A stretch of DNA of 64,000 bases from NCBI GenBank assembly GCA_050084985.1, contig JBITNC010000001.1:159774001-159838000 (forward strand), written 5' to 3'. Shown here piece by piece: positions 369-54,265 of the stretch. This DNA comes from Nageia nagi. Its lineage: Eukaryota; Plantae; Pinophyta. Every line of letters starts with the position of its first letter. The stretch's first letter is position 1. A model generated the notes under the pieces. It saw only the letters and a program-made list of their open reading frames with translations. It was not told the DNA's origin and ran no database searches. The position numbers and the translations under genes were made by a program.

Positions 369-2696
369 TGTCAATGAGCAAAATTATAAAAGAAATGATT
401 ACAAAATTTTAGACATACCATGCCCATAGTGGCATGGATTTACTTTGAACATTCATGCGATTTGAAATATTGAAATACAAGGCTACTAAATATTCAAATA
501 TTTGGTACATTTATGAAAATTGAATGCTATTATTTATTATTCTACTAATAATTATTTTCAAGGCCATGGTTATTCCATGGGAAAATATCTCATTTTTCAT
601 AGGTTATTCCAAGCTTGAGTCATTAAAAGTTCTCATCAACTTGATAATCATGGATATTGCAAGCTCGAGGCATGAAAATGGACCTCCTATGCTTGCTCTT
701 CATAGACTATGAGTTTTCATCACAGTATTCTATACATCATGGTTTATAGAACTATGAGTTGCATCAACCATAGTAACATAATTGATATCATATTAATTTG
801 ATACTTGCTCTTTCAATTGATTATTCTCTAATGGGATGTGATATATATGGGTATTATGCTGATTTGTTCTTTAGGTATTATCCAAGTGAGTAGGATTGGC
901 ATAGATCGCTCACCTCATATAGGGACTTCGATTTTGGCTTGCTTACTTGATGTAACATAAGAAGTGGAAAACAAGACCAAAAGGGGGAAGAAAACATACC
1001 ATACTTGACATATAGATCAAAATAGAGAAGTTCACTTTACTATTGAAAAATTTCCTCTCTTCTCTAAACTTCTTTGGATTATGCAATTTCAATGCTTTTC
1101 ATTTCATATCCAAAGAGGTGTAAAATTTAGATGCCTAAAAATGATTTATTATTTATATAATAAATCATATTTATAATTCTTAAATTATCAATGACAATAA
1201 TATATAAATCAAGATAAAGTTGATATTACAATATAATACCATATGCTAAGATCAATGCAATATCATTTACTATGGTTCATGTTTAAGTTATCTTGAATAC
1301 AACAAAGATTATTATTATTGTTGAGATTCAAACTCATTCCTCTCTATATCCTTTTATAGGCTATAAATATGGGTGAAATAGGTTGATTTCCATAAGATTG
1401 GATTGCTTTGATATGATAAAGAACTCTAATAGGTGGTTTTCAACTATAGTAGTTTCTCTAGATGACAACCTATCTTGGGAACTTGTTATACTCTAAGCTC
1501 TAAACTTTATATCTTTTATGCATAACATGAATAATCTAGTTCCATATCATCAACAACATTCTGCCTCTATGCTATTAGCGACATGCACCTTCTAGATCAG
1601 GAGTTTTAAATTTTGGTGTTTGACTCATTGCTCTAATCAGGTGAAGATCTGTATTGAGCTTATCTCGAATCCAATCCCAATCCTCTAAAGATTCACTGCT
1701 ATTTGCTTTTGAGGATTGCACATACACTCTATATCAGGTTCATGCATTTCATGTAATATTATTGAAATATGATATAATGCTTATTATATATTCAATTGTA
1801 TATTGTAGACTATTATTTAATTATGTTATGTTATAATTAACAATTTGAGGTCTAAAATATAGAGAATGAGTTCAAAAGGTAGATATGAGAATATCTCCCT
1901 ACAGTGCTTTGGATGTCATATGTAAGGCCATAAAAAGTTGAACTTCCCCTTAAATAAATCTAATAACTCAAAACCAAAGAGCAAGGAAGATGAAAGAAAG
2001 CAAAGGAGATCCATTCCAATAGCACTAACACCAAACCAATTAGATGATAATTATAGAGAGAAAAAGCCTGTAGTCTCTATTCTCGATCAAGGTTGCCCAA
2101 TGGAAACTATCACTAAGAAGTCTTACCCTCCCAAAGGGGTCTGCACAATGGTCTCATCATTGAAGGAAATAACCCCCTATGAACAACAAGTTTCATGAAG
2201 AAAAAGTCCCATTGTTGAATCAAACTCATGCACATTATCCAGTAATAAGAATATTTAGGATAGAAATCTTGATGTATAGTATGAATCTATTGATGCCCAA
2301 GAAGGTGGATCACATAGAGACTATCTACGAAGCCTCAAATGCAAAAATAATTTCTCTAATCTTTTTGATACATAACCCTGTACCTGGCCAATAATTGTAG
2401 CAAAATCTATGGCTATTTTAGAAGAATAACATGTTGATCTATATTCTCTTGTTGGTTACCATAGATGGATGGATACTCCTTCTGAGTATGAAAATAGAGT
2501 GTAGGATAGTATTGAAATATATTGACTAAATGATGTATCTTTTTAAGATTTTGTAATATGGGTTTTTGGGCCCTATATAAAAAACCACTATTATATAAAT
2601 TTACCTTTGACAAAAAAAAAATTATACTTTCAAATATTTTATCTCACCAAAGTGGATGAACTGTAAAAAAATGTTGAGGAGGAGCCTTCACACCAA

Positions 2697-2709
2697 GCTC
2701 TTGATACCA
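2697..2709 (-). promoter_or_regulatory. Primer-binding site (tRNA-iMet type)
   Basis: Plus strand GCTCTTGATACCA = minus TGGTATCAAGAGC, 2 nt from the LTR end at 2712. Confidence 0.7.
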
Positions 2710-2711
2710 AA

Positions 2712-3209
2712 TGTAGGAATAAAGACTTAAACACTAAAGTCCTAGAGGCCTTAGATTATATAAAAGCTCTTTTAAACATCAATACTCAAAGCATAAACAA
2801 TCTCACAAATTGACACAATATATAAGTGGTTCCTCCAACTATGGAAGTACATATACTAACTAAGATCTTTCTCATTCATAAAGATAACTCTCTTATAAGA
2901 CCTCTTTCTTCCTCTCCTAATGCTAATCCTAAAGCATAACTTTGATTTAACTTTTGGTAAGTAATCACAAGGAGAGGGCCTTCTATTTATAGAGAAAAAT
3001 CCTCCATTAGATCACCCTTTTAACCATTGTACAAAGACATGATATGCTTCACCACTTTACCCAAGGGGCGTGCTCATGAGGAGTGTATGAAAAGTTACAT
3101 TATCATATTCACTTAAATACTTAAGGTATCTAGGGATACCTTTAAGTATTGTTGAATTTAAAAGAACAACCTTACAAAACTTTACAAAAATGCATTATAC
3201 ATTCCAACA
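2712..3209 (-). mobile_element. LTR (about 498 bp) of a copia-type element, followed on the minus strand by a tRNA-iMet-type PBS
   Basis: Termini TGTAGGAAT...ATTCCAACA form an imperfect inverted repeat. Minus-strand TATA (plus strand TATTTATAG at about 2984). It abuts an integrase-coding relic at 3210. Confidence 0.7.
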
Positions 3210-4030
3210 TTAAACACTTTAAGTAGAACCCACTTTGATTTTCCACATGATTCTTAAAAAAATTAAAATATTAAAAATGCCTCATACTTTGCTTTCAAAA
3301 AAGTAGACCCAACATATTCTTGAAAAATCATCTATAAAGTAAGGAAGTAGAAACTTTTACCTAAACTTAGAGTTTGCATTGGGCCATAATTTTTGGAATG
3401 CACCTATTGAAGGGGGTAAGAGGATCTCCATGCTTTGCTTCTTGGAAAACTTGACCTTGAGTTCTTTCCCAAAGCATATCCTTTACACACACCTTTGTGA
3501 TCTTGGACTTTAGGCAATCCATACACCATCTCTTGAGAAACCAACAATCTCAAACTATGAAAGTTCAAGTGCCCATATCTTAAGTGCCATAACTAACTTT
3601 TATCATCAATAAAAATATTTGCAAAATTAGTTCTTTGCTCTCCAAAATTTAATAGAAACAACCTTTTCTTAGTCAATGGTGACAAGCATATGCCCATGAT
3701 TCTTTTCATAGATAACATAATTGTTATCTTAAAAAATAAGCTTATAATTGTTTTCCATGATTTGAACAATACTTAATAAGTTATGTTTCATATTTAGAGT
3801 GTAGTATATGTCATTCACCTTTTTTTTACCTTCATTGATGTGTTCCTTCATAACTCCTTTGCCTTCAACTTGAAAATAATTATAATCTTTAAGATTGATC
3901 TTTGACTTGTAGTAAGTGTCTATTGTAGAAAAAATCTCCCCCTTATTGATCATGCCATTGAAAAAACCAATATCAAGAAGCCATATCGAATTCAAATTTT
4001 GATATGTTTTGATATATGATAAAAACAAAA
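3210..4030 (-). pseudogene. Degraded Ty1/copia pol (protease, GAG-pre-integrase, start of integrase)
   Basis: ORF 3729-4028 has WLLDIG (copia WxLDSG protease-like) and NLLSIVQI. Minus strand at about 3560-3590 reads WHLRYGHLNF, and at about 3215-3260 FKNHVENQSGFYLKCL. Multiple stops and frameshifts. Confidence 0.8.
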
Positions 4031-9987: not shown

Positions 9988-12857
9988 TTTTAGAGTATAT
10001 TATACTTAGGTATGATATTTACTTAATTTTTACTAGGATATTAGGTATTATATTTTTATCTTTTTCCTAATTTGTTCAGGATTCTAACATCTTCTTGTTA
10101 TAAGTCCCTCCATGTAATTTGTGTTCCTTAGGTATTTATTCATAGCCTTTTTGGAATAATCAATCAGTTTCTTGAATTTTTCTTTATTCCTTTTGTAGTG
10201 TTGTGTATAGCTATTTTCTTCCGTTTGTATTGCTTTTATTGCAAACATCCTAAGATTTCTTGCAACTCTAGTTTATAGGCTGCTGGTTCATCATTTTTAA
10301 TCCTTTAGCTGGTGTGAATTGGTGTGTTTTGTGAGATCATCCACATCTGCTGGGCGTTTTTGAGGAGATTGTTTAGATCAGAAACCACTTTATGATTATC
10401 CTGTGGTCATTGTCGTTCAGAAATTGTCTGCATTATGCCATGTCTATATGTGTTTGGCTTGCATATAGGCGTGTAGATCTAGTGGATACGGACGGTAAAT
10501 AGTGTGACTTCTAAAGTTCCTATGAGATCTGATGTGATTGTGCACTCTGTCGAGGCATCAGCAATCTCTGGTGTGTTTTGCAGCAGATCGTTTGAAGACT
10601 TTTTGCAGACAACAACTTTCTAGACGTCTCCCTCCTTGGTGTGATCTGCAATCGTATGGTCCTCTGCATCTCAGTGCTTCAAAGTGGTTTACCTTGGCAG
10701 ATTTCTACGTATCTCCTTTTTGGTCTCTGCTTTGCCTGCACTTCTCAGTGTACACTGATCTGGATCTGGCTTGAGTTCTTCACCTCAAGGCCTGCAGTCA
10801 CTAGACGTCTCCTTAGCTCTGTGTTTTTTGCGGAGATCTATGGTTGCTCTCTCTTACAGCAGATGGTGGTTGGGACAGCTTGTTTGAGAGCTTATAAATC
10901 TGTTGAGGACATTGGGAGGTTATTCTCTTCTGATGGGGATATTTGAATTTAGGCGTTCCAAACTAATGTGGGCCCAGTTTATTTTTGGCTGAGTGGGCCC
11001 TTCTTCTGCTAACATGACGTTGACCTTGTGTGCTTTCCCTTGGTGACATGGCATTTGGTGTTTTTTGGCTGATTTGGAGTTGCTAAAAATGCAGCATTAG
11101 CTGGCTTGGCTCAAAACTTTTTTATTTACCATTTAAAAATGTCACCTTGGGGCAGTCACAATATCAGTCACTCTTTTGAAGATTTTTCCCTCCCTGGATC
11201 TCTATTTCGAGTGTCACCAGTTTTCGAGGATTCTTCATTTCATGTTGGATATTTTGAGTGGTTGTATTACATGTTTTTGCATTTTCATGACATGGTTATT
11301 GGTTCGTCTAAGGTATTTTGTTTTGATGGTGTTTTGTCTTGTTGTACTCTTGGTAAGCAACATTAAGATCTTTTTTTAGAAGGCAAAGTTCATTGTGTAT
11401 CTTCTCCTTTGGAGTTGGTACATAGTGACTTGATGATTTTTCTATACCCATCATTTACAGGATCTTTGATACCATGGAAAGATTTGTAAGGGAAGCAAAT
11501 CAAGCTCAAGAACACAAAAAATACACATCATCATAAATCTGAAAGAAGCTCAAACAAAACTGATCATGAGTATGGAAAAAGAGATCATGAGTGTCAAGAT
11601 CAATCAATTGATATGCCTTCATGTCCTCATTGTAGCCAACAAAGATGAGAGGCTTGCTCTTCTTATCCAAGCCTTACACTTGATCTTCGAAATGAAGGCC
11701 CAAGCATGACTACCAAACACATTGAAGCGTGACATATCTGGCTTGGTTCCAGTCCAAGCCTCTTCAAGAGTCATGTGCTCAAGTGCTAGATGGGGAGTGC
11801 AATTCTAGACATAGTTCGCACAATTGATTGCCTCTGCCCAAAAAATAGGAGAAAAGTCTCTAGAATGCATCATACAATTGGCCATCTCCTTCAGTGTTTT
11901 GTTCTTTCTTTTTGCAACTCCATTTTGTTGTGGAGTGTGAAGGACATAATGTTGATGAACATTTCCATGCTTCTCAAGGAGCTCTGAAAAGTTTGTACTA
12001 AAGTACTCCCCCCATTGTCTATGCGAAGATTTTTGATGCAACTAGAAGATTGATTCTCGACCAAAGCCTTGGAGATTTTCAAGTGAGCAAAAACATCACT
12101 CTTGTACTTGAATGCATACTGAGCTCCTATAAAGGATGGGTACGAAAAAATTATCAAGTCACTATGTACCAACTCTAAAGGAGAAGATGCACATTGAGCT
12201 TTGCCTTTTGGAAAAGGGTCTTGATGTTGGTTACCAAGGGCACAACTAGTGAAAACACCATCAGAACAAGACACCTTGCAAGCTAATGACCATGTCATAA
12301 GGGAGGTATTGCTACAAACAACTTTGTGTCACCTTACTTTCTTTGGGTGATGGAAGCTATCCTTAGGGGGTGTTGATGAGGACATCTTCCTCTCCATCCT
12401 CCTTCTACTTCTTCTTTCTCTATTGGCATATGTTTTTTTCCATATGCGGTTTTTTCATCATCTTTCAACAAAGTTTTATGGATATATTATACATGAGTAC
12501 CTGATCAGGTATTGTTGTTGGGACTCATATCTGTGGATATGCCACTTATTTTACCTCCTAGTCTCACTTAAGGGGGGGTGTTAGAGTATATTATACTAAA
12601 GTATGATATTTACTTAAGTTTTACTAGGATATTAGGTATATTTTTATCATTTTCCTAATTTATCTTTTTCCTAATTTGTTAAGGATTCTAACAACTTCTT
12701 GTTATGAATATCGGCATGTAATTTATGCACCTTGGATATTTATTCATAGCCTCTCTTTTGGAATAATCAATCAATCTCATGAGTTTCTCTTCATTCCTTT
12801 TGTATTGTTGTGTATAGTTATTTTCTAGGTTGGTATTGCTTTTATGCAATCCTTTCA
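9988..12857 (+). mobile_element. Internally deleted, rearranged Ty1/copia element (about 2.9 kb)
   Basis: Similar LTRs at about 9988-10250 and 12579-12857. G-run PPT (TTAAGGGGGGG) immediately before the 3' LTR. Flanks ACAAC (9983-9987) and ATAAC (12858-12862) are a probable 5-bp TSD with one transition. Contains integrase-region remnants. Confidence 0.75.
11650..12300 (-). pseudogene. Copia integrase remnant, inverted inside the 9988-12857 element
   Basis: ORFs 11891-12298 (SSPLELVHSDL, LRIDNGG) and 11805-12041 (HTPQQNGVAKRKNKTLKEMANCM, FWAEAINCANYV) are rve integrase motifs. Confidence 0.85.
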
Positions 12858-27069: not shown

Positions 27070-27570
27070 GTAGAGAAAAAGGCACTTGTCGATCTTGTAG
27101 TCATGCCCTGGCTCTATTTCAAAGAGTGTCTACTCATGTCACTCTTGTAAATTCCTTACATCACTAGTCATAGCCTCTACCTAACCCCAAGTGCATACAT
27201 TCTGGAGAGGTCTCTACCTCCCATTCTCAGAGCCTAGTTGTTGGTTGGGGAGATGTCTCAAATCCCTCTCCTCTACAAGCTTAGGATATTGATATGTGTG
27301 CGAACACTAGCGATAGTACTTATAATGATGGATGGAATATGGATTCCATTGAAGGTGGTGGGTGGGAGCATATGCAATTTATTGACAACTTTCGCCCACC
27401 ATCCTCTCATGATTGATGTGGAGTTTTATGTTGCTAGACATTAAGCTTTTATGGTTGTATTTATTTTGGTTGATGATTGGGAATTCCAAGATTTTTGATT
27501 GGTAGTTTCTTCTATTCTTTTTTAGTGCATTTCTCACCTTGTGAGGATTTTGTACTTAACTCCTTGTAGT
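27070..27570 (+). mobile_element. 5'-truncated, diverged 3' fragment of the same LINE lineage as 42061-53366
   Basis: Frame 27237-27416 reads VVGWGDV...YNDGWNMDSIEGGGWEHMQFIDNFRPPSSHD*, collinear with the LINE tail at 52878-53096. The downstream GTGCATTTCTCAC...GTACTTAACTCC resembles the LINE 3'UTR GTGCTTTCTCAC...ATGCTTAATTCC. Boundaries approximate. Confidence 0.75.
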
Positions 27571-41145: not shown

Positions 41146-42054
41146 GGGAAACTTACCAAAATACCCCTATAAATTCATGAAATTACCAAAATACCTTTTA
41201 ATCTATAAAAATTATCAAAATACCCTTATAAATTCATAAAAGTACCAAAATTCCCTTCAATCTTATAAAATTACCAAAATACCCTTATAAGTTCATGAAA
41301 ATTACCAATATGCCCCTAAATTTTATGAATTAAAAAATGAAAAATATTTTAATACTCTTATGAAAAACAAAATAATGATTGCAATATTTCATTCTATTAT
41401 TTATTGTTTAGAAAATTGAATACTTTTAATTTATTGTAATAAAAATTCATTGCAAAATTCACATATTACATACCGATTGAATTTAAAAGAATTACATTTT
41501 TTTTAAAATATTTTATTTATTTATAATTTAAACAATAACTCTTCATTTTATTTCTATTTTATGATACACACGCACCCAACTCACAAACCAACATAGGGAT
41601 TGGAACATAGGACCCATCGATGACCGTTGCAGACATCCCAAGGCCCAATTCATATAAGAATTATATTTATTTCAATTTATATAAGAATATTTATTTATTT
41701 CATTTGAAAAATATTTTATAAATTTCTTGAATCATTTTAATAATTTTTTTTATGCATTCTGCCCACTATGATTTCATGTAGTTAAAAAACATTACTAAAA
41801 AATTACATTAAAAAAATTTAAACAAATTAAATGAAGTACTAAAGGCTTAAATAGTTTTTTTCGTTATTTTATTTTTTATAAGAGTAGTAATATATATATA
41901 TATATATATATATTTTAAAGGTATTTTGGTAATTTTAAATATTAAGGGCATTTTAGTAATTTCATGAACTTATAGAACTATTTTGGTAATTTTTAAATAT
42001 TAAAGGGTATTTTGATAATTTCATGAACTTACACGGGTATTTTGGTAAGTTTCC
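41146..42054. mobile_element. Non-autonomous Mutator-like (MULE/foldback) MITE
   Basis: TIRs GGGAAACTTACCAAAATACCC / GGGTATTTTGGTAAGTTTCC(C), built from about 29-bp subrepeats (41146-41330 and 41915-42054). 9-bp TSD TTTATTCTA at 41137-41145, with the second copy displaced by the LINE to 53374-53382. Confidence 0.85.
41891..41912. repeat. (TA)11 microsatellite inside the MITE
   Basis: Direct reading. Confidence 0.95.
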
Positions 42055-42223
42055 TTTATTGCATCCATGCTGAGAGCTAAGAGTCAAACCTTCTGCATGT
42101 TTATGAGTCTAGGGTTTTGGTTTCCCCGTCACACCGCTTTTTCTTTTAAAAAGATTTTACGAGATTTTAAGTTGATTTGACATCACTTATACGTCTACCT
42201 TGGGCAGTTCCCCCTTCTTTATT

Positions 42224-43484
42224 ATGGCTGCCACTCTTGCCAACTCTTCACTTGATGGTGAAGCAACTGGAGGGAGCAATGGCACTAAGGAAGCATCCTC
42301 CCAAGTTTTTTCTAGAAGTGGAACACAAGGTAAAGGCTCTGTTCCTCAAGCTTTTATTCTTGTAGAAGATTTTAGTGCTATTTGTCAATGGTTTGAATTG
42401 CATACCCTGGTGAGATATTTTCTAGGTAGGATCCCCAATGACTCCTTGTTGCATTTTTGGGTTAGCTAAGTTTAGACCCCTTACGGTATTAAGGTAGAAA
42501 ATGTCCAAAACCTCACCAAAGGTTACTTTCTATTTCATTTTTTTGACTTTGCACATGCACAAAAGGTTCTGAACAAAGAACCATGGAAGGTATGAAATTC
42601 CTTATTAATATTTCAAATTACCATAGAGACTTTACAGTTGATAGTGAGGCTACCACTGAAGTCCCATTTTGGGTTGAGTTTCCTAGGTTACCTATTCTGT
42701 GTCAGAAGTACTTGCATACCCTAGCTAAAACCTTAGGGTCTTTTGTTTGCTTTGAACTAAAAAGGTTCTTCTCGGCTCAACCCTCTTGGTGAGTTTGTGT
42801 GAAAGTTGACCTAACTAAGGATCTCCAAGAGTTTATTAATGTGCATATTGGAGAATTGATTCTTCATCAAAGGGTGGTCTATATCAACCTTCTGAACACT
42901 TGTTATCATTGTCAATCCTCTACTCACAAGATTTGGGTCTACCCACTTATGGTGGGAAGATTCAAAAAATGGACCTCGGCTGCACCCCCGATAGTTGCAA
43001 CCCCAGCTACTCCTTCTAGAGGTGGCAATAGTGAATGAAAAGTGGTTTCTTCTCGTTGAAATCATCCACCCCAATTCAAGAGCCAACCATTGCTCCCCAA
43101 CAACCTGTTCTAGTGGAAGAACCACCGACAACCCCTACATTTGTGGCAAATGTAGGTGTTTTTCAACCCCCTCTGGTTTTCCAATAAGCGGAGGTAGATA
43201 TTCCAGTTTCAATGATGTCTGAACCCTTTGGTTCCTCCATTTGGTCGGGGCCTTCGTTTTCCTCTATTATCTCGGCTCCTCCTCTAGCTTAGGGAATAGA
43301 AGAAAGCTTAAGCTTCAAGTCTTGTCGCTCTCACAACCCTCATAGAGAGGGCTTTGATGGCCATCCAGATAAGAGATGGTAAATGTTTGACACCCGTTGC
43401 CAGGTTGCTTTTTCTCAAGATGGTGTTAATGCTTTTGGGGCCCTAACTGATTTAAGGGATTCTAATGACAACATGGATCTTTAG
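42224..43484 (+). pseudogene. LINE ORF1 (DUF4283 plus CCHC knuckle), disrupted
   Basis: ORF pieces 42200-42469, 42583-42792 (VPFWVEFPRLP) and 42799-43038 (KVDLTKDL...CYHCQSSTH). In-frame stops. Confidence 0.8.
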
Positions 43485-43501
43485 GTCCATGATACCCCTT
43501 A

Positions 43502-45201
43502 ATGATTTTTTATTCTTGGAATGTCAAAGGACTAACAAAACTAGTTTGCAAATACACGATCTGTAGTAAGTTATCCAATGTTGCTCACTTGTATAGTAAT
43601 CTTGACTTTGTCTGTTTGCAAGATATTAAAGTTGTTAACTTCATTCTTCAGTGTACTTGTTCTTTTCTTTGGTTAAAGGGCCCTTTTTTCATACCAATCA
43701 TTCTCTTGGGAGTGGAGGTGTTGTCACTTTCATTTCTCCAAGATGGTGCTCGAATGTTGTTTCTTGGGAGGTGGACCCTTCCAACCAAATGGTTCGGGTC
43801 TTGCTGGACTTGCATGGCAAGCCTTTTGGCATTATCAATATTTATGCATCCAATGATATGCATGAGCAGTGTACTTTATGGAGGTTGCTTTCTTTGTCAC
43901 TCCCCTTTGCCACCTGGGTTCTCTATGGGGACTTCAATATGGTGGAAAATAGTTAGATAAGAAAAATCAATCCCCTTGGCAGTGGAGTGTGGGAGAAAGA
44001 GAGGCTTAGTTTTTCATGAAAAACAAACTATCTCTTTGATCCGAATTTTGGTTTCACCCTTGAAGCTTTTCTAGAAGCTCAGTGGTTTACTTGGTCCAAT
44101 CTTCAAATTGGGGATGCTCGAGTTCTTAAGAGGTTGGACCATGCCATGCTTTCAGAAAGTGACTCCTTTCATTTTACTCATGTTTCACCTTTGAATCCCT
44201 TTGTGATGGTTGTCCCTAATACCACCTTGTTTGATCATGTTCCTACCTTGTTTGACATTTCTCAAGATCACACTTCTTGTAGAATTTTCACTTTATGGTT
44301 CTATCTAAACGTTTCCTTTTTGCAAAGTGTCACATTTGGAATCTCATTCCCCAACCTTCTGGGACTTCAAGGTGCATTCAATAGTAGAAAGATGCCATTA
44401 CCAAGACCACTTCTACTCTTCACACCCTTGGTGTTGGGTTCGCTAAGAGGAAAAGGAAAGGTAACATTGCTCTTCGAGTAGAACTTGCATGAGCCACCCT
44501 TAGACTAGAGGCTAGTCATTTTAGTCAACCTGCTCAAGCTTATGTTGTTGCTTTACGTCATGAAATTAGAAAACATGAGTTGTATGAAGCCAAAGGAGCC
44601 CAATTGCTAGCTAAAATGAATTGGCTCAAAGTGAGCAATAGAGTCTCCAAAGAATTTTTTGAACGCCTTCACCCTCCTATTCATGCCACTCAATTTCATG
44701 CTATTCAAGCAAAAAGGGTTTGTTTCACCTCCCTTCTTGATATTATTAACACTTTTGTGGCCCATTACCAGCAAACTTTTTATGTTCAACCTCTTACTAA
44801 TGCTCAACAAAAAGCCATTAAGAAGTGCTACTTTGTCATACCTTTGAAACTTTTTGAAGCTCAGAGGGATATTTGTGATTGTCCTCTTTCTCTTCAGGAT
44901 CTTAAGACTGCTCTTTCCCACATGGCTAATGAGAAAGCTTCTAGAATTGATGGATTTTCCTATGAGTTTTACCAAGAATTTTGAGATTTGGTTGGCTTTG
45001 ATCTCCTTTGAGTGTACAAGGATGCTATGGTTGTTGACTCTTTAGGCCAGTTAATCAATAAAAACAATATCAAGTTTATTCCCAAGCAAGGAGACCCTGA
45101 TATCATTACCAACTAGAGGCTTATAACTTTATTAAATGTGAGCTATAAAATTATTGCCAAAGCTTTAGCTTTTAAGCTTAGATTGTTGCTTACTTTGATT
45201 G
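43502..45201 (+). pseudogene. LINE ORF2 5' part (APE endonuclease plus start of RT), disrupted
   Basis: MIFYSWNVKGL, VCLQD, NIYASN, GDFNMV, KRLD, DH, KASRIDGFSYEFY and ITLLNVSYKIIAKALA. Confidence 0.9.
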
Positions 45202-45836
45202 TGTTAGAAAAATGGAGACTAAGACAGAACCAGCCAGACAGAACAGGCCAACCGGCCAACCGGCTAAGATGCCAGTAAATCTGAAGGATAGTTTTGTTTA
45301 TAAAGCCAACCGGTCTGCAGGGCAGTTTCTTTCTCATTTCAAACCAATTTTCAGTTGCCAAGGAGCCATGACACCTGTTCAGCAGTTGTAGAAGGGTTGG
45401 GGGTTACCTAACGACCTTCCTGATCCAACTTGGGTTTAAGTTGGGTTAGTTTGTACCTATAAATAAGAGGCTTGAGTTGAGGCATGTATGTAGTTGGAAT
45501 ATGTGTGTATGACTGTAATTTGACAGCATTTGTGAGGTTGATTGTAATTGTTGAGAGAGAGATTGTAGTGAGGCTTTGTTGTAACTCCAAAGTAAAGGTT
45601 GTAGCAAGGTTATGCTGCTGGTGTATTGCTTGGAGGACTTGAATGCAAAAGAGTTGAAAGCTTCTCCGTGGATGTAGCCTACACTGGGTGAACCACGTTA
45701 TCTCTTATGTCTCTCTTGTGTGATTGATGTTTATGGATGTTTATTTTCAGTAGTATGCTTAATGTTGTTTCTTCTTTGCCAAAGACAATCTAAATTGTGA
45801 ATGCTCTTGGTTATATGAACTCTTTAAATCCTAATA
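45202..45836 (+). repeat. 5' LTR
   Basis: TGTTAG...CTAATA (terminal CA mutated to TA). TATAAATA at about 45458. Six transitions versus the 3' LTR by eye. Confidence 0.97.
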
Positions 45837-45838
45837 AT

Positions 45839-45851
45839 TGGTATCAGAGCC
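45839..45851 (+). promoter_or_regulatory. Primer-binding site, tRNA-iMet
   Basis: TGGTATCAGAGCC, 2 nt after the 5' LTR. Confidence 0.95.
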
Positions 45852-45916
45852 ACGTTGTTGTGTTGGGATTTTGTTGGTGAATCTTGTGTGTAGATTGGAA
45901 ATCAAGGAAGAGCACT

Positions 45917-48900
45917 ATGGCAGAAGAAGGGAGGCTGAAGGTGGAAAGGTTTAATGGGCAAGGATTTCAGTTTTGGAAAATGCAAATGGAAGACTACCTC
46001 TACCAAAAGGATCTCTATCTACCTCTAGAAGAGAAGAGTAAGAAACTTACTTCTATGAGTGATGAAGAGTGGAATCTCTTGGATAGAAAGGCTTTGGGTG
46101 CTGTAAAGACTTTGTTTAAGTTCTAGTGTAGCTTTCAATATTTCCAATGAAAAGACCACTAAAGGTGTAATGGATAAGCTTGCTAAATTGTATGAAAAAC
46201 CATCTGCCTCTAACAAAGTATACTTAATGAAAAAATTGTTTAACATGAAGATGAATGAAGGTAGTTCAGTTCAGGACCATGTTAATGAGTTCAATACAAT
46301 CACAAATCAATTGACTTCAGTAAGTTTAGAATTTGAAGATGAAGTAAGGGCCTTGTTAATTCTGTGTTCACTTCCGGATAGTTGGAATAGCTTTGTTATG
46401 GCTGTTAGCAATTCTTCTTCTAATGCAAAATTGGTCTTTGATGAAGTTGTTGGAACAATTCTTAGTGAGGACATGAGGAGAAAGTCCACGGGAGAATGCT
46501 CCAATGCTGCTCTCACAGTAGAGGCAAGAGGAAGACCAAAGGAAAAAAGGAGAAGCAAGTCAAGAAGCAAATCACAAGGAAGGTCGAAATCACAAGGTAA
46601 AACAAAATTGGAATGTTGGTATTGTGGTAAAAAGGGTCACATTAAAAAGGATTGTTGGAATAGAAAAGGTAAAGAATGTGATAGTAGTAATAATGAAAGC
46701 ACAAGTAATCAAGAGGTTAATATGGTTGGTGAATTAATCCAAGATGCTTTAATCATGTCTAACGAAAAGAACAATGATTATTGGGTTCTTGATTCGGGTG
46801 CTTCATATCATGCTACTCCACATAAGGACTTCTTTTCTAATTTTACACATGGTGATTTTGGTCAAGTGTTATTAGGTAATGAACATCCATGTAAAATTGT
46901 TAGTATGGGCAATATAACAATGAAATTACCTAATGGAACACAATGGACTCTTAATGAAGCAAGACACATTCCGGATCTTAAAAGGAATCTCATATCAATA
47001 AGTAAATTGGATAAGGAGGGCTATGTGATGACATTCGGGGATGGTAATTGGAAAGTTTCTAAAGGTTCAATGGTATTTGCAAAGGGAAATTTGGTGGGGT
47101 CTCTTTATTTACTCACAAATGTCTTTGATTATTCATTGAATCTTGTTTCCTTTGGTAATGATACATCACTATGGCATAATAGACTTGGACATATGAGTGA
47201 AAAAGGAATGAAAATGTTACACACTAATGGTTCACTTCCAAATCTAAAAGAAATTGATTTAGGATTTTGTGAAGATTGTGTGTATGGTAAACAAAAGAAA
47301 GTTAGATTTCTTAAAGTTGGCAATGAAAGGAAGAGTCACAAATTAGAGCTTGTTCATACAGATGTGTGGGGTCCTGCACAGGTTTGCTCACTTGGGGGCT
47401 CATCTTATTTTGTCACTTTTATTGATGATTGTACCAGGAAGACATGGGTATACTGTATTAAAAAGAAATCTGATGTGTTTGAAATTTTTAAGAGGTGGAA
47501 GGCATTGGTTGAGAATGAAACTAATTCTAAGTTAAAATGTCTTAAGTCAGATAATGGTGGAGAATTTTGCAATAATGAGTTTGATTCATTTTGTTCACAC
47601 AATGGCATTAGAAGGATTAAGGTGGTTCCTAGAACTCCACAGGAAAATGGGGTTGCAGAGAGAATGAATAGGACTATCTTGGAAAGGGCTAGAAGTATGA
47701 GGATACATGCTGGGTTTCCTTTAAATCTTTGGGCTGATGCTATTGACACTGCTGTTTACTTGATTAACAGGGGTCCATCTATGGCTTTAGATGGAGGCAT
47801 TCCAGAGGAGATGTGGACAGATAAAAAGTTGAATTACTCATTCTTGAGAGTCTTTGGTTGTGAGGCTTTTGCACATGTTGATAAGGAGAATAGAAATAAA
47901 CTTGATGCAAAATCACAAAAATGTTATCTTATTGGATATGGTGTTAATGATTTTGGATATAGGTTATGGGATGTTGATAACCATAAAATCATTAGAAGTA
48001 GAGATGTTGTATTCAATGAGAATAACATGTATAAAGATAGGTTGCAAAAGGTTGAGGAACCCAAGAGTGTATCTCTAGAAGATGTTGATCAATATAAGGG
48101 TCCTGATAATGTTGAAGCACCTCCACCACAAACACCTCAAACTTTGCCGCTTAGAAGATCCACAAGGATTAGAAATCCTCCTGAACGATATTCTCCTACT
48201 CTTTATCATATTTTGTATACTGATGGTGGCGAACCTGAATGTTTTGATGAAGCTATGCAGGGTGGTACACAGATTAAGTGGGAGCATGCTATGAAGGAGG
48301 AGATGGACTCCTTACTTAAGAATCAGACTTGGAGTTTGGTTGAGCTTCCAGAGGGTAAGAGGGCTCTTACTAACAAATGGGTGTACAGGATAAAGGAGGA
48401 TGCAGATGGGCGATAAAGGTACAAGGCGAGACTTGTGGTAAAAGGTTTCGAACAGAAAAAAGGTATTGATTATGATGAGATCTTTTCTCCAGTTGTTAAA
48501 ATGACCTCGATTAGAGCAATATTGAGTCTTGTTGCTATTGAAAATTTGTTTCTTGAACAACTAGATGTAAAGACAGCTTTCCTTCATGGGGATTTGGAGG
48601 AGGATATTTATATGCATCAACCCGAAGGTTTTGAGGTCAAAGGTAAAGAAGGGTATGTATGTAAATTGGAAAAGAGTTTGTATGGCTTAAAACAAGCACC
48701 CAGGCAATGCTATCATAAGTTTGACACTTTCATGGTAACAAATGAATTTGTAAGATGTCAATCTGATCATTGTGTGTATATAAAAAGAACAACAAATGAC
48801 AACTATGTAATCTTGCCTTTATATGTGGATGACATGTTGATAGCAGGACCTAGTATGCAGGATATTGTTGATCTTAAGGAAAAGTTGGCTAAAACTTTTG

Positions 48901-49783
48901 AAATGAAAGATTTGGGTGAAGCTAATCAAATTCTTGGAATGAAAATAACAAGAGATAAACAAAACCACTCACTAAGACTAAGTCAAGAAGACTATATTGA
49001 AAAGGTTCTTAAACGGTTCAATATGAATAATGCAAAATCTGTAACTTTACCATTGGCAAACATTTTAAACTCACCAAACATTTATGTCCTAAGACAGATA
49101 AGGAAAAGGAGTACATGACTAAGGTTCCTTATGCTTCAGCGGTTGGGAGTTTAATGTATGCAATGGTATGTACTAGACCAGATATAGCACAAGCAGTGGG
49201 AGTGGTTAGTAGATTTATGAATAATCCAGGAAAAGGGCATTGGGAAGCAGTTAAATGGATCCTTAGGTATTTAAGGGGTACTTCTCATTACTCTTTATGT
49301 TTTGGTGGATCTAACTCTTGTTTGCAAGGATATGTTGATTCTGACATGGCAGGTGATATAGATGGTGGGAGAAGCACTACAGGTTATGTGTTTACCATTG
49401 GAGGTACAGCGGTTAGTTGGATTTCAAAACTCCAACAGGTTGTGGCTCTCTCCACTACTGAGGTAGAGTACGTGGCGATGACAGAGGTGAGTAAAGAATT
49501 GATTTGGTTGAAGAGGTTGATGGAGGAACTGGGAAAGGTGCAGGAGGATGCGAAGTTATGGAGCGATAGCCAGAGTGCTATCCATCTTGCAAAGAACTCA
49601 GCCTACCATTCGAGAACCAAACACATCAAATTGAGGTACCACTTCATCAGGGCAGCGTTGGAGGATGGTTCAGTCAGTTTGGGGAAGATTCACACGTCAC
49701 AAAATCTTGCGGACATGTTCACGAAAGTTGTTACAAAGGAGAAGTTGGGCTCTTGCTCAACTTGGATTGGTCTTAAGGAGTAA
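45917..49783 (+). pseudogene. Copia gag-pol polyprotein with three lesions
   Basis: CWYCGKKGHIKKDC knuckle, WVLDSGAS protease, WHNRLGH and SDNGGEF integrase, YVDD RT and GYVDSD RNase H. Frameshift at about 46106, stop at 48414-48416, frameshift at about 49060. Confidence 0.95.
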
Positions 49784-49832
49784 AGGCCAAGATGAGGAGC
49801 TTTTGACCCTTGTTGCAGAGGAAGAAGTCTCC

Positions 49833-49843
49833 AAGTGGGAGAT
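49833..49843 (+). promoter_or_regulatory. Polypurine tract
   Basis: AAGTGGGAGAT directly before the 3' LTR TG. Confidence 0.9.
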
Positions 49844-50478
49844 TGTTAGAAAAATGGAGACTAAGACAGAACCAACCAGACAGAACAGGCCAGCCGGCCA
49901 ACCGGCTAAGATGCCAGTAAATCTGAAGGATAGTTTTGTTTATAAAGCCAACCGGTCTGCAGGGCAGTTTCTTTCTCATTTCAAACCAATTTTCAGTTGC
50001 CAAGGAGCCATGACACCTGTTCAGCAGTTGTAGAAGGGTTGGGGGTTACCTAACGACCTTCCTGATCCAACTTGGGTTTAAGTTGGGTTAGTTTGTACCT
50101 ATAAATAAGAGGCTTGAGTTGAGGCATGCATGTGGTTGGAATATGTGTGTATGACTGTAATTTGACAGCATTTGTGAGGTTGATTGTAATTGTTGAGAGA
50201 GAGATTGTAGTGAGGCTTTGTTGTAACTCCAAAGTGAAGGTTGTAGCAAGGTTATGCTGCTGGTGTATTGCTTGGAGGACTTGAATGCAAAAGAGTTGAA
50301 AGCTTCTCCGTGGATGTAGCCTACACTGGGTGAACCACGTTATCTCTTATGTCTCTCTTGTGTGATTGATGTTTATGGATGTTTATTTTCAGTAGTATGC
50401 TTAATGTTGTTTCTTCTTTGCCAAAGACAATCTAAATTGTGAATGCTCTTGGTTATATGAACTCTTTAAATCCTAACA
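49844..50478 (+). repeat. 3' LTR
   Basis: TGTTAG...CTAACA, 635 bp. Confidence 0.97.
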
Positions 50479-50483
50479 GATTG

Positions 50484-53096
50484 TTCGACCAAAGGAAACA
50501 AGTTTTGTAAAGGGCCACTATATCTTAGATAATGTTATTGCTATATGGGAAGGCATGGAATGGACAAGGGTCTTTGATCAAGAAGCTCTGTTTATTAAAA
50601 TTGATTTTGAAAAAGCCTATGATAAGATTGAATGACACTTTATCTTATCCATGCTCCAAGCACTTGCGTTTGTCCTTGTTTTTCTTCAATCGATTTGAAT
50701 GTTGTTTCGAGATGCCCCTATTGTTCTTACTATGAATGGTGTTTGGTCGCCTCCCATTACCCTTGCCCGCTCTGTCCATCAAGACTGCCCTTTAGTCCCT
50801 TCCCTATTTATTTTAGTTGATGAGGCTTTCGGTTATCTTTTGGCACAAACTTGAGTAGGGTGTGATTCGGAGAATTCCTTTGCCTAACTTCCCCTTGTAG
50901 CTCATTTATGGCCATTTTGTTGATGACTCTTTTTTAACTCTTCTTCAAGATGAGCAATCTGTTTGATCAGCTTTAGAGTGTTTGAATATTTTTTTGTTGT
51001 GCCTTTAGCTCCAATATTCAATGGCAAAAAACTTCCTGCTTCAAATAGGTGTCAACACCTATGCCTAAGTGGCTTAGCCTCTTTCCCTAGAAATAAATTC
51101 AGCTTGGTGAGGTGTTTAACTTTCTTGGTATTCCCTTTGCCTTTCAAGCTTCCCCTGCTCAACTTTGGAACTTTGTTATTCAGAAGATTGATAAGAAGCT
51201 CAGGTATTGGACTACCAAAAAGCTCTCTCTTGCAAGGAGGTACCAAATTTGCACGAAGATCTTAGCTTCTCCTCGTGCATTATTCCTCTTGTTGGGTTCC
51301 TTCTAAGGCGTGCTATCAGAATTTGGATAAGCTTCTTAAAATTTTTATTTGGGCTTCTGATAGCCAATAAAGAGGTTTTCACAGAGTGGCATGGGATATT
51401 TGCTTCCTTCCTCGTGCTGCTGGTGAAATGGGCATTTTTGATTGTCAGAATCAAGGTTTTGCTTTGTGTGTCAAATGAATAATTAGAGCTTTAGAGGGTG
51501 ATGAAGCCTGAAAGATTCTCATTTGGCATTGTGTATCTATATGCCTCCCATATTGTAGGAAATCTTGGAAAGGGTTAGACCTTCAAACGATTCTCACTGC
51601 TCAAGTTCCTATCAAGATTGTTGGTTATTTTGTTGCAAAAAGTATCTGGAAAGTCTAGGAAGCCCTCAAACCATGGCTACAGTGGAATGGGAAGCAAGTT
51701 TCATCAGGGGCCTCTCTATATTCACTGAATGTTTAGTGGTCTCATGTTCTCAAATTTGATGGATTACCTTTGGCAAATATTTAGTGGGTCAAAGCCCTTC
51801 GCTTTCATAGTCAGGGAGTTGACTCTCTTCAACAATTTTTTGATTTTCAGACCAAGCATTGGTTGCCTTGGGAGCAATTTTGCAACAAGTTCAATTTGCG
51901 AACAAATGATAAAGCTACTTTTGATGTCATCCTTGACAAAATCCTATTTTCCGTTTGGACGAAACTAGGGCGACATTTTTAGAAGCTTTGGTGGGATGAT
52001 TGGCGCTAGCCTAAGAATATCCATCTTCAAAAGTTTAAACCAAAATTAGGCTATCTTTGGTTATCTCCTAATGTCCCTATGTTTGAGCATCTGAACAATT
52101 GATGGGACATTTCCACTCAATCTAGATGGAGTTTAAGATTTTCTATAATTTGGGCCTGATTCCTTGACCCTAAACAAAGTTTTTTTGCATAGAATCTATT
52201 GCATCAAAGATTACCTATTGGCCACAAGCTTCAATATTTGGGGGTGGCCAACTCAGTCTATGCTTTTTGTAGGAAACTTGATAGTTTCAATTATGTCTTG
52301 TGGTCTTGTTCTAAAGCCTCAACCACTTGGAGTTGGATTATTTCCTTCTTTCAACCTTTTATAGTTACTCCTTGTTCTTGGATTCGTGTGTTATTAGGAG
52401 ACCCTATTTAGTTTTATAAACCCTTGGAGAAAATTTGGCATATATTTCAACTCAGTATTTTATATCATCTTTGGAAAGTCAGAAATGACATTGTTTTTAC
52501 TTGTCAGGAAGCTTTCTTTTCCTTTTCTTTAGGTGACAAATATGCTATTTTCTACAAATGTTGGCTGCAGATTATTGTTCAAGTTGAGAAAGTGAACGTG
52601 GAGGTCCAACATCTGCAGAGCTTACTTGATTACTGGGGGAATGCACCCTGCTCCATTAGTCGGGTTTCTCTAGAATGAGTTCCTAGTCGTCGTTCCCAAT
52701 CGTGTGGACATTCTTCTCAATCCAAACACTTCTCTGGTGGACGAAATTCTGCTAGACCCTCACAGAGACATCACTGGTCGCAACCCCCCCCCCCAAAATC
52801 CAAATCGGAGTCAACTGTTGGACCCAATTTCTCCTTGCTCTCAGAGTGGCTGGGATGTTTGCTCTCCACCTTCTGATCCAATTGGTTGGGGTGACGTGGG
52901 AATGTCTTCCACAACTGGGAAGGGTGGTGTTAATGTGCATGTTACTGAAGTAGAGCATATTGTTCCTGAGGCAAAGCATAATGAAGCTTTTACTACTCCA
53001 GATGATGATGGCTGGCGTGCACCAAGTCTTGACGGCCATGGTTGGGAGCATCTAGGCGTTGTAGACAACTTTTGCCCACCCCAATCCCTCAATTAA
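50484..53096 (+). pseudogene. LINE ORF2 3' part (RT, zf-RVT, GW-rich C-terminal extension), disrupted
   Basis: Frame continues across the copia: LI|VRPKETSFVKGHYILDNV..KIDFEKAYD, then QDCPL, HFVDDS, FLGIPF, zf-RVT-like RLPIGHKL..FC..SFNYVLWSC and LWKVRN. A low-complexity tail ends at stop 53094-53096. Confidence 0.88.
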
Positions 53097-54265
53097 CTTG
53101 TTGTTTAATGTGCCTATGATTATGAGCTATGTTTCTCTCCGACTACCATTATCTGTTATGTGCGGATAGTTTTTCGAGGTTGATTTATTGGCGGTCTTTT
53201 GTATGGTTGTTTAACGCCCTTTTTCCTATCCTAGGGTTAGTTCGAAGGGGATTCCTTTTGGTTTATCTATGGTGCTTTCTCACGGGGTATGCTTAATTCC
53301 ACCTGCCCCTTTTTTTGTATGAAAGATTTTATGTTAATAGAAAGGTCTTTTTCATTCAAAAAAAAAGTTTCCCTTTATTCTAATACATTGTGGGTGCTGA
53401 AATACATGTACAGATTGATTGGCTTTTAAGTATTACACAAAATACAAAATCTCAGTGATTGCAACAAATGGACATTCACACAAATCTGAAACAGTGCATA
53501 ACATACCAATAAACTGAATGACACCAGACGCTCGTCTCAAATTAAGGAACAACCTGTATTATACAACATGGATATTATGAATTCAAACATAAGATAATGC
53601 CTGGACCTAAATGTTGAAACTAACATATGTATGGTTATCACATCTTTCATGTAGTATTTGGCATAATAAAGAGAATGTCATATCACGCTAAGGTCAGTAG
53701 CAATTAATTCAAAATCAATTTGAAATTTCTTGCCCAAAACAAATTTTATATGAAAACATGGCGCCATGGTCTGAACACATTATACTTGTTAACTGAATTC
53801 TGGAAAATGAGGACAATATTCAACATATAGCTTATATCACTCTACAATTTCTTGTGGCCAGATATAGGCAAACAGGAAAAGAGATCTGAATTTTGAATGT
53901 CTGTCAAATGCATGAGGCCTCTTATTTGTTCCTATCTTACTGATACAAGAGCTTTGCTCACAGCCTTCCATCTATAGGCTGCAGTTCAGTTGGGTTTTTA
54001 TCACAACTAACCAGAAGCCATTGATAATAATTTTCCCTTAAAGAAGATCGTTACCTGATTCACAACAATCAGATGAAGAAAAGGTCCAAATATTTAACAT
54101 CTGATGCACATGACATGAATACTCCTGTAGTGATTACTTGCAGAATGGAGAATGTAACTAAGCAGAGAAACATGCTTTATTCAACTTTTCACTTTGGTTG
54201 TTAAACAATCTGCAGTTTCATGATGAGAGGAGATACACTCAAATGCACATAGTATCTGTTACAGC

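Follow-up and report, generated by a model that had tools for sequence, protein, structure and literature searches.

Does the reverse transcriptase of an L1-type long interspersed nuclear element (LINE) in the gymnosperm Nageia nagi end in a protein tail built around glycine-tryptophan (GW) motifs, and what could such a tail bind? The element lies in a stretch of 64,000 nucleotides (nt) (assembly GCA_050084985.1, contig JBITNC010000001.1, positions 159,774,001 to 159,838,000 of the forward strand; hereafter the window), where an open frame with four GW dipeptides stands behind the second open reading frame (ORF2). The reading that we tentatively favour from sequence comparison is that this tail may be a lineage-specific, disordered C-terminal extension of ORF2 whose two-Trp end docks a host protein. 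The tail would be the decayed remnant of an extension of ~110-140 codons in one gymnosperm L1-type LINE subfamily, in which the ancestral ORF2 frame would have run past the zf-RVT region and the YWGNAPCS segment, via an S/R/P-rich linker, into the low-complexity tail and ended in a two-Trp motif (DGW-x9-W with hydrophobic and NF/PP residues) followed by a stop. As a short linear motif at the extreme C terminus, this end would recruit a host factor to the LINE ribonucleoprotein; we infer translation of the tail in active elements, its disorder and the docking of a host factor.

A GW-rich tail behind ORF2

The four GW dipeptides, in SGWDV (W1), IGWGDV (W2), DDDGWR (W3) and HGWEH (W4), have their glycine codons at 52848, 52884, 53010 and 53040, and all lie within 66 residues of frame 0, whose 140 open codons (52674-53093) are followed by TAA at 53094-53096. 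The initial annotation had reported four in-frame GW at these codons, and all its coordinates are correct. ORF2 itself is read at position mod 3 = 2; its frame passes ...LLDYWGNAPCSISRVSLE before it is closed by TGA at 52676-52678. By shuffling and six-frame counts, the GW cluster is far beyond chance, and it recurs in a diverged second copy. When the tail DNA was shuffled 20,000 times, four in-frame GW never arose. Across its six frames, the window has 81 GW in 127,996 codons, and clusters of at least three GW within 70 residues occur at only two loci, the tail itself (copy A; four GW, open) and copy B at ~27243 (three GW).

The features of the tail and its surroundings are as follows; L001 is a related plant contig and P0006 a related protein sequence, both introduced below.

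52676-52678, plus strand: TGA in the ORF2 frame; AGA in L001, GAA in copy B, a stop at the same codon in P0006
52679-52796, plus strand: S/R/P-rich linker, sharing the reading frame of ORF2 (mod 2); its mismatches show no third-position excess
52775-52777, plus strand: TGG, which encodes the W of HHWSQ; L001 and copy B both carry TAG here
52784-52794, plus strand: run of 11 C, in which copy A is 4 nt longer than L001 and copy B, shifting the tail from the ORF2 frame into frame 0
52797-53096, plus strand: GW tail, 99 codons plus TAA, with four GW; no Pfam family, and no secondary structure in the AlphaFold2 model
53007-53084, plus strand: conserved C-terminal block, DGW-x9-W followed by hydrophobic and NF/PP residues; spacing invariant in the six-copy alignment
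53097-53366, plus strand: 3' untranslated region (UTR), with a terminal box at ~53284-53357 that is common to the tail-less sister lineage, and an A9 tail at 53358-53366
27132-27416, plus strand: copy B, a 5'-truncated, strongly diverged tail copy with HH-TAG, PLPNPK, GWGDV, DGW and GWEH, ending in TGA

Six independent copies of the tail entered the analysis, namely A in the window, B, L001 (P0003 and P0005 are the same locus), the plus strand of L002, P0002 and P0004, and all comparisons were made between natural copies, copy by copy. A metagenome scan for the tail yielded only the plant contigs L001 and L002, of which L001 carries a LINE copy 72% identical to copy A, junction included, and L002 carries on its plus strand a 5'-truncated copy of the last 40 codons only (330 bp, 10001-10330). 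A search of 1.84 billion protein representatives gave three real matches, P0002, P0003 and P0004, which are peptides of 61-73 residues from short contigs of decayed copies; P0001, a repeat protein of 1140 residues, was discarded as spurious, matching only the low-complexity middle of the tail. In homologous-protein searches, the 99-residue tail found no match and the end of ORF2 found only P0006. The ESM Atlas held no usable match for the tail, and a scan of viral contigs for it gave nothing. Among sequencing runs, the family was held by one low-coverage DNA run (X1), and no RNA run was found.

The minus strand of L002 (10552-16000) carries a long copy of a sister LINE lineage with 66% identity, in which the GW tail is absent. 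ORF2 of this lineage ends ~20 codons past NAPCSSS and is followed by ~190 nt of UTR up to the terminal box. The tail is therefore a ~370-nt addition specific to one lineage. On L002, the truncated tail-bearing copy and the tail-less sister copy stand tail to tail.

What the six copies share lies at the C-terminal end: D-G-W, nine variable residues and W-[EK]-[HY]-[LM]-x-[VIF]-[VI]-[DN]-N-[FW]. The DGW-x9-W spacing is constant in all six, and the alignment, with the four DNA copies aligned as codons, is free of gaps. Five of the six continue with x-P-P and a stop six codons on; in P0004 the sequence is DNWPKFIL, which probably reflects a frameshift. Over the last 90 nt, copy A and L001 are 83% identical, equal to the best reverse transcriptase (RT) bins, compared with 63-72% plus indels in the middle of the tail and 62-66% in the 3' UTR.

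At the junction with ORF2, the codons from SQ to NP[KN] are separated by 9 nt in L001 and copy B and by 13 nt in copy A (CCC CCC CCC CCA A), bearing out the slip in the C11 run that had been suspected in copy A. In L001 and copy B, the ORF2-frame segment HH-x-SQPPPNPK shares its frame with the GW motifs; in copy B, HH-TAG, the PLPNPK segment, GWGDV, DGW and GWEH all stand in one frame, interrupted by three stops. On the question of whether the tail is in frame with ORF2, then, L001 and copy B say yes, and copy A is off only by its 4 nt. Judged from these copies, the ancestral arrangement is that with the tail in the ORF2 frame behind zf-RVT.

The tail 52674-53093 matched no Pfam family at E<=1, RNase H included, in keeping, as far as Pfam goes, with the earlier statement that no RNase H motif was recognisable. 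No significant sequence was found for it by profile search of the PDB, and AlphaFold2 gave a model with a mean predicted local distance difference test (pLDDT) of 53.5, a predicted template modelling score (pTM) of 0.14 and no secondary structure, from a shallow alignment of six rows. A known folded domain, the outcome that would have spoken against the initial annotation, thus appeared in neither Pfam nor the PDB, and AlphaFold2 gave no fold; the tail is probably disordered in light of the model. A likeness to ankyrin repeats (D[IV]NA.D.DG...L...G, window 52983-53084) was considered and rejected, as the PDB profile search gave designed ankyrins only at E 0.1-1 and Pfam ankyrin gave no match.

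Coding or untranslated

The tail is probably coding. Its frame is open for 140 codons in copy A, 81 in L001 and 73 in P0004, although the adjoining ORF2 of copy A, a single frame over 51281-52678 with zero frameshifts, has 13 stops in 466 codons. The stop codon has the same place in all four DNA copies, and the peptide P0002 ends there as well. Differences in peptide length of 7 and 10 residues leave each reading frame intact. Within the invariant DNA blocks, three of the four isolated variable sites are synonymous third positions, and the GGN before W3 occurs with three different bases, a wobble-site pattern that is suggestive only and not significant (P about 0.11).

Several observations besides this lack of significance weigh against a translated extension of ORF2. 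Mismatches between copy A and L001 at codon positions 1, 2 and 3 number 99, 91 and 159 in ORF2, a third-position excess, against 17, 27 and 25 in the tail, where there is no such excess. The initial annotation had proposed dN/dS and Trp conservation as measures of the tail. By the Nei-Gojobori method, dN/dS is 0.45-1.0 for its final 37 codons; of the Trp, W3 and W4 are invariant and W1 and W2 are not kept. The mismatch and dN/dS pattern is what a disordered region with a few key residues would look like, and equally what non-coding DNA would look like. The conservation count is itself biased, as L001 and L002 were fetched by patterns requiring both Trp. An intact protein of ORF2 plus tail is absent among the 1.84 billion protein representatives. 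In run X1, the LINE family is abundant and the tail poorly covered, with 5-10 times fewer contigs at >=80% likeness over the tail than over RT; the thin coverage fits a fast-evolving or subfamily-specific region.

The stop codons at the junction weigh in the same direction. The codon at 52775-52777, TGG in copy A, is TAG in L001 and copy B, that is, in two of three copies. The TGA at 52676, previously explained as a probable CGA>TGA change, is borne out only in part as such: it is not shared by L001 or copy B, and P0006, from a fourth copy, stops at the same codon. Given these shared stop states at 52775 and 52676, a true stop may have preceded the tail.

Set against this is the way in which the family decays. 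Most stops are private to single copies, and the extra stops of L001 read CGG, CGG and CAA in the window. Over 51281-52678, ORF2 decayed almost wholly through nonsense point mutations, chiefly G>A and C>T, and the TGA at 52676 belongs to these 13 stops. At the zf-RVT position where P0006 has W, the window copy and the sister copy each carry a stop; such repeated loss of one Trp codon to a stop is common in this LINE family. Five of the 28 Trp positions of the sister are TAG or TGA in copy A, and the stop at 52190 of copy A stands at a Trp position of P0006. By rough estimate, a TGG hit twice and an ancestral TAG explain the three states at 52775 about equally well.

The alternative that survives best, although we consider it unlikely, is that the tail is untranslated 3' UTR and ORF2 ended at the TAG behind HH or at the 52676 codon. 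In that case a conserved GGNTGG nucleic-acid element, or limited divergence, would have left the open frame and the GW as by-products. It draws on the TAG at the same codon in two of three copies, the most diverged one included, and on the sister lineage, whose ORF2 ends just ~15 codons upstream of that codon. The missing third-position excess and a dN/dS near 1 fit it as well, and LINE 3' ends carry conserved RNA elements, this family having a common terminal box. Against it, an open frame of 100 codons has a chance of ~1-2% in random sequence, the tail stands in the ORF2 frame in both copy B and L001 (one in three by chance), and the peptide length differences preserve the reading frame. A conserved RNA structure in the block was tried and rejected: RNAalifold gave -10.75 kcal/mol with a covariation term of +0.12, which is no structural support. 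The decay of TGG to a stop at one codon, common as it is at the Trp positions of the sister and at the zf-RVT Trp, likewise weakens the argument from the shared TAG. Should the tail be untranslated, what remains would be a dead LINE family with a 3' region specific to its lineage.

Candidate partners of the two-Trp end

If the tail is a coding extension with a docking end, Argonaute (AGO) is the leading candidate partner, although we would give this identification a low probability. In its favour, the Trp stand in a GW context, W3 follows an acidic run, and the two Trp keep a fixed spacing of 10 residues. Both invariant Trp are preceded by Gly, and the fixed spacing could, as far as the sequence goes, bridge two AGO pockets. 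For the pair SGS3-AGO1, a negative patch in addition to GW matters for the positively charged surface of AGO1 (bioRxiv 10.1101/2025.10.18.683247). Published criteria for Argonaute hooks describe regions rich in G/S/N/D/A in which Trp (with G) is kept while the rest drifts and in which L, I, M, Y and C are disfavoured (PMC2910046); by these criteria, the tail consists of 43% favoured and 12% disfavoured residues.

Two features of the copies argue against Argonaute. Only W3 and W4 are invariant among the six: L001 keeps W1 and has W2 deleted, copy B is without W1, and P0004 has Q at both positions. Furthermore, conservation around W4 extends to L, V/I, N, F and P: its surroundings read WE[HY]L..[VI][DN]N[FW], and five of the six copies have PP behind NF. 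Known hooks, in contrast, keep Trp alone. The conserved L, V/I and F count against Argonaute because published hooks disfavour such residues. The TAG at the 52775 codon in two of three copies and the missing third-position excess in the tail weaken this reading too, and the W-x-x-L at W4 also fits an ATG8-interacting motif. As a separate observation, P0004 reads GQ where other copies have GW at W1 and W2; this may be TAG translated under a non-standard code, as TGG to CAG needs two changes.

The proposal that a gymnosperm L1 lineage fused an Argonaute-docking two-Trp module to the C terminus of its own reverse transcriptase is, on the sequence, an improbable one. Were it so, the LINE ribonucleoprotein with its hook would titrate or mislead complexes of AGO and small interfering RNA, as a decoy, or would alternatively use chromatin-bound AGO as a landing pad. 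In the full-text literature searched, whose coverage is incomplete, no paper was found that describes an Argonaute hook or a GW motif in connection with retrotransposons or LINE ORF2, and the earlier remark that no AGO module is known from LINEs agrees with this. As far as the searches reached, such a hook, if true, would be the first known from a protein of a retrotransposon.

About as improbable is that the tail is coding and docks some partner different from Argonaute, for example ATG8 or an adaptor that reads a Trp plus hydrophobic residues. W4 stands in a W-x-x-L core with acidic residues upstream, and WE[HY]L or WKYL is present in five of six copies (WEHM in copy B), followed by the conserved [VI][DN]N[FW]; the hydrophobic positions are the conserved ones, even though L, I, M, Y and C are disfavoured in published hooks (PMC2910046). 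However, [WFY]xx[LIV] has very low specificity and the likeness is a resemblance only, and W3 (DDGW-R/H/S/N), which does not fit the core, is equally invariant. Another candidate, a PAM2 motif binding the poly(A)-binding protein in L..VDNF.P, was rejected because the spacing from L to F is one residue under the consensus.

The least probable alternative is a tail that is coding but not contiguous with ORF2, made by leaky read-through of the TAG as a minor extended isoform or as a separate small open reading frame: two of three copies have the TAG with the tail exactly in frame behind it, but CAC-TAG-TC[AC] is not known as a read-through context in plant viruses, no start codon is conserved among the copies, and the TGG of copy A with the frequent decay of Trp to stop explains the data more simply. 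Viral read-through domains provide the analogy for such a minor extended isoform of ORF2.

The carrier element and known systems

The tail belongs to the 3' end of an L1-type LINE that is full-length but dead and that is split by a Ty1/copia long terminal repeat (LTR) retrotransposon:

42061-53366, plus strand: L1-type LINE, full-length, dead and copia-interrupted, delimited by collinear blastn matches to the minus-strand sister copy of L002, a match resembling a target-site duplication (TSD) and A9
42200-43230, plus strand: ORF1 remnant of the DUF4283 type, with a Pfam DUF4283 match at 42583-42789
43502-45201, plus strand: 5' part of ORF2, endonuclease and start of RT, decayed; 65% identity to the L002 sister and a SWNVKGL-type endonuclease start
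45202-50478, plus strand: Ty1/copia LTR retrotransposon inside ORF2, not part of the LINE; LTRs at 45202-45834 and 49844-50476/8, TSD GATTG
50484-52678, plus strand: 3' part of ORF2 by Pfam and frame analysis, comprising RT, the zf-RVT region and a C-terminal segment ending ...YWGNAPCSISRVSLE then TGA

With blastn, the sister LINE on the minus strand of L002 is collinear with the window at 42310-42822, 43502-45179 and 50480-52653 (65-72% identity). The ends of the element are marked by a likely imperfect target-site duplication of 13-14 bp, AGTTTCC(C)TTTATT, at 42047-42060 and 53366-53380, and by the poly(A) end, A9 at 53358-53366. The DUF4283 match of ORF1 (42583-42789) lies just above the Pfam cut-off (E 2.8e-6, 27.5 bits, cut-off 27.2). 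RVT_1 was recognised in the sister copy (L002:12883-13380, minus strand; E 9.6e-8, 32.4 bits, cut-off 29.6) and weakly on the window piece 50477-50632 (E 0.049). Pieces of the sister matched zf-RVT (E 0.0066) and Exo_endo_phos (E 0.06), both under the Pfam cut-offs; the copies are broken by stops, and the motifs are readable by eye. Differences between copy A and L001 are dominated by C>T and G>A, as expected under methylation-driven decay. The inserted copia element is young, with a pair of 633-bp LTRs that are 99.2% identical, GATTG at 45197-45201 and 50479-50483, and open reading frames of 748, 227 and 222 residues.

Directly before the poly(A) stands the terminal box of ~75 nt, containing GGTRTGCTYAATYCCACCYGMCCC and then a T run, at 53284-53357 in the window, 8915-8990 in L001, and 10250-10328 (plus strand) and 10552-10630 (minus strand) in L002. 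Being common to the tail-bearing and tail-less lineages, the box may be where the reverse transcriptase recognises the 3' end; its support by RNAalifold is weak. Another repeat family, unrelated to the tail, is shared by the window (2687-3212) and L001 (5516-6461, two adjoining copies) with 76-78% identity.

Gymnosperm genomes are huge and consist largely of old retroelements. A disordered tail with a Trp docking motif, if true, would mean the gain of an interface for a host protein rather than of an enzyme. Were the partner Argonaute, GW mimicry of host silencing cofactors would be a trait of retrotransposons as well as of viruses, which would bear directly on how gymnosperm elements escaped or exploited small-RNA silencing.

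The Argonaute hooks of the NRPE1 C-terminal domain, SPT5L/KTF1, SGS3 and GW182/TNRC6 resemble the tail in having Trp beside Gly and no predicted structure, and the C-terminal placement of the tail matches the extensions of several Arabidopsis hook candidates (PMC2910046). The tail differs from these host hooks in that it has two invariant Trp instead of many Trp repeats and conserves the neighbouring L, V/I and F too, and its carrier is the reverse transcriptase of a retrotransposon rather than a host silencing factor. The viral suppressors P38 of turnip crinkle virus (TCV) and P1 of sweet potato mild mottle virus (SPMMV) are, like the tail, parasite proteins with few GW and offer an analogy for a decoy, but share no sequence similarity with it. 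In TCV P38, the GW motifs sit in a folded capsid protein. VANC of the VANDAL transposons is likewise an accessory function that a transposon carries and that may be directed at host silencing; it is, however, a folded DNA-binding protein encoded by a separate gene, whereas the tail is short, probably disordered and fused to ORF2, and the two share no similarity. Among LINEs themselves, Smyshlyaev et al. (2013) reportedly described plant L1 elements with a C-terminal RNase H domain. Both that domain and the tail are modular, lineage-specific additions behind the zf-RVT region of ORF2, although the tail has no RNase H, Pfam match or predicted fold. Gains by plant L1 ORF2 such as RNase H are known, and what is new here is a plant L1 with a novel C-terminal module.

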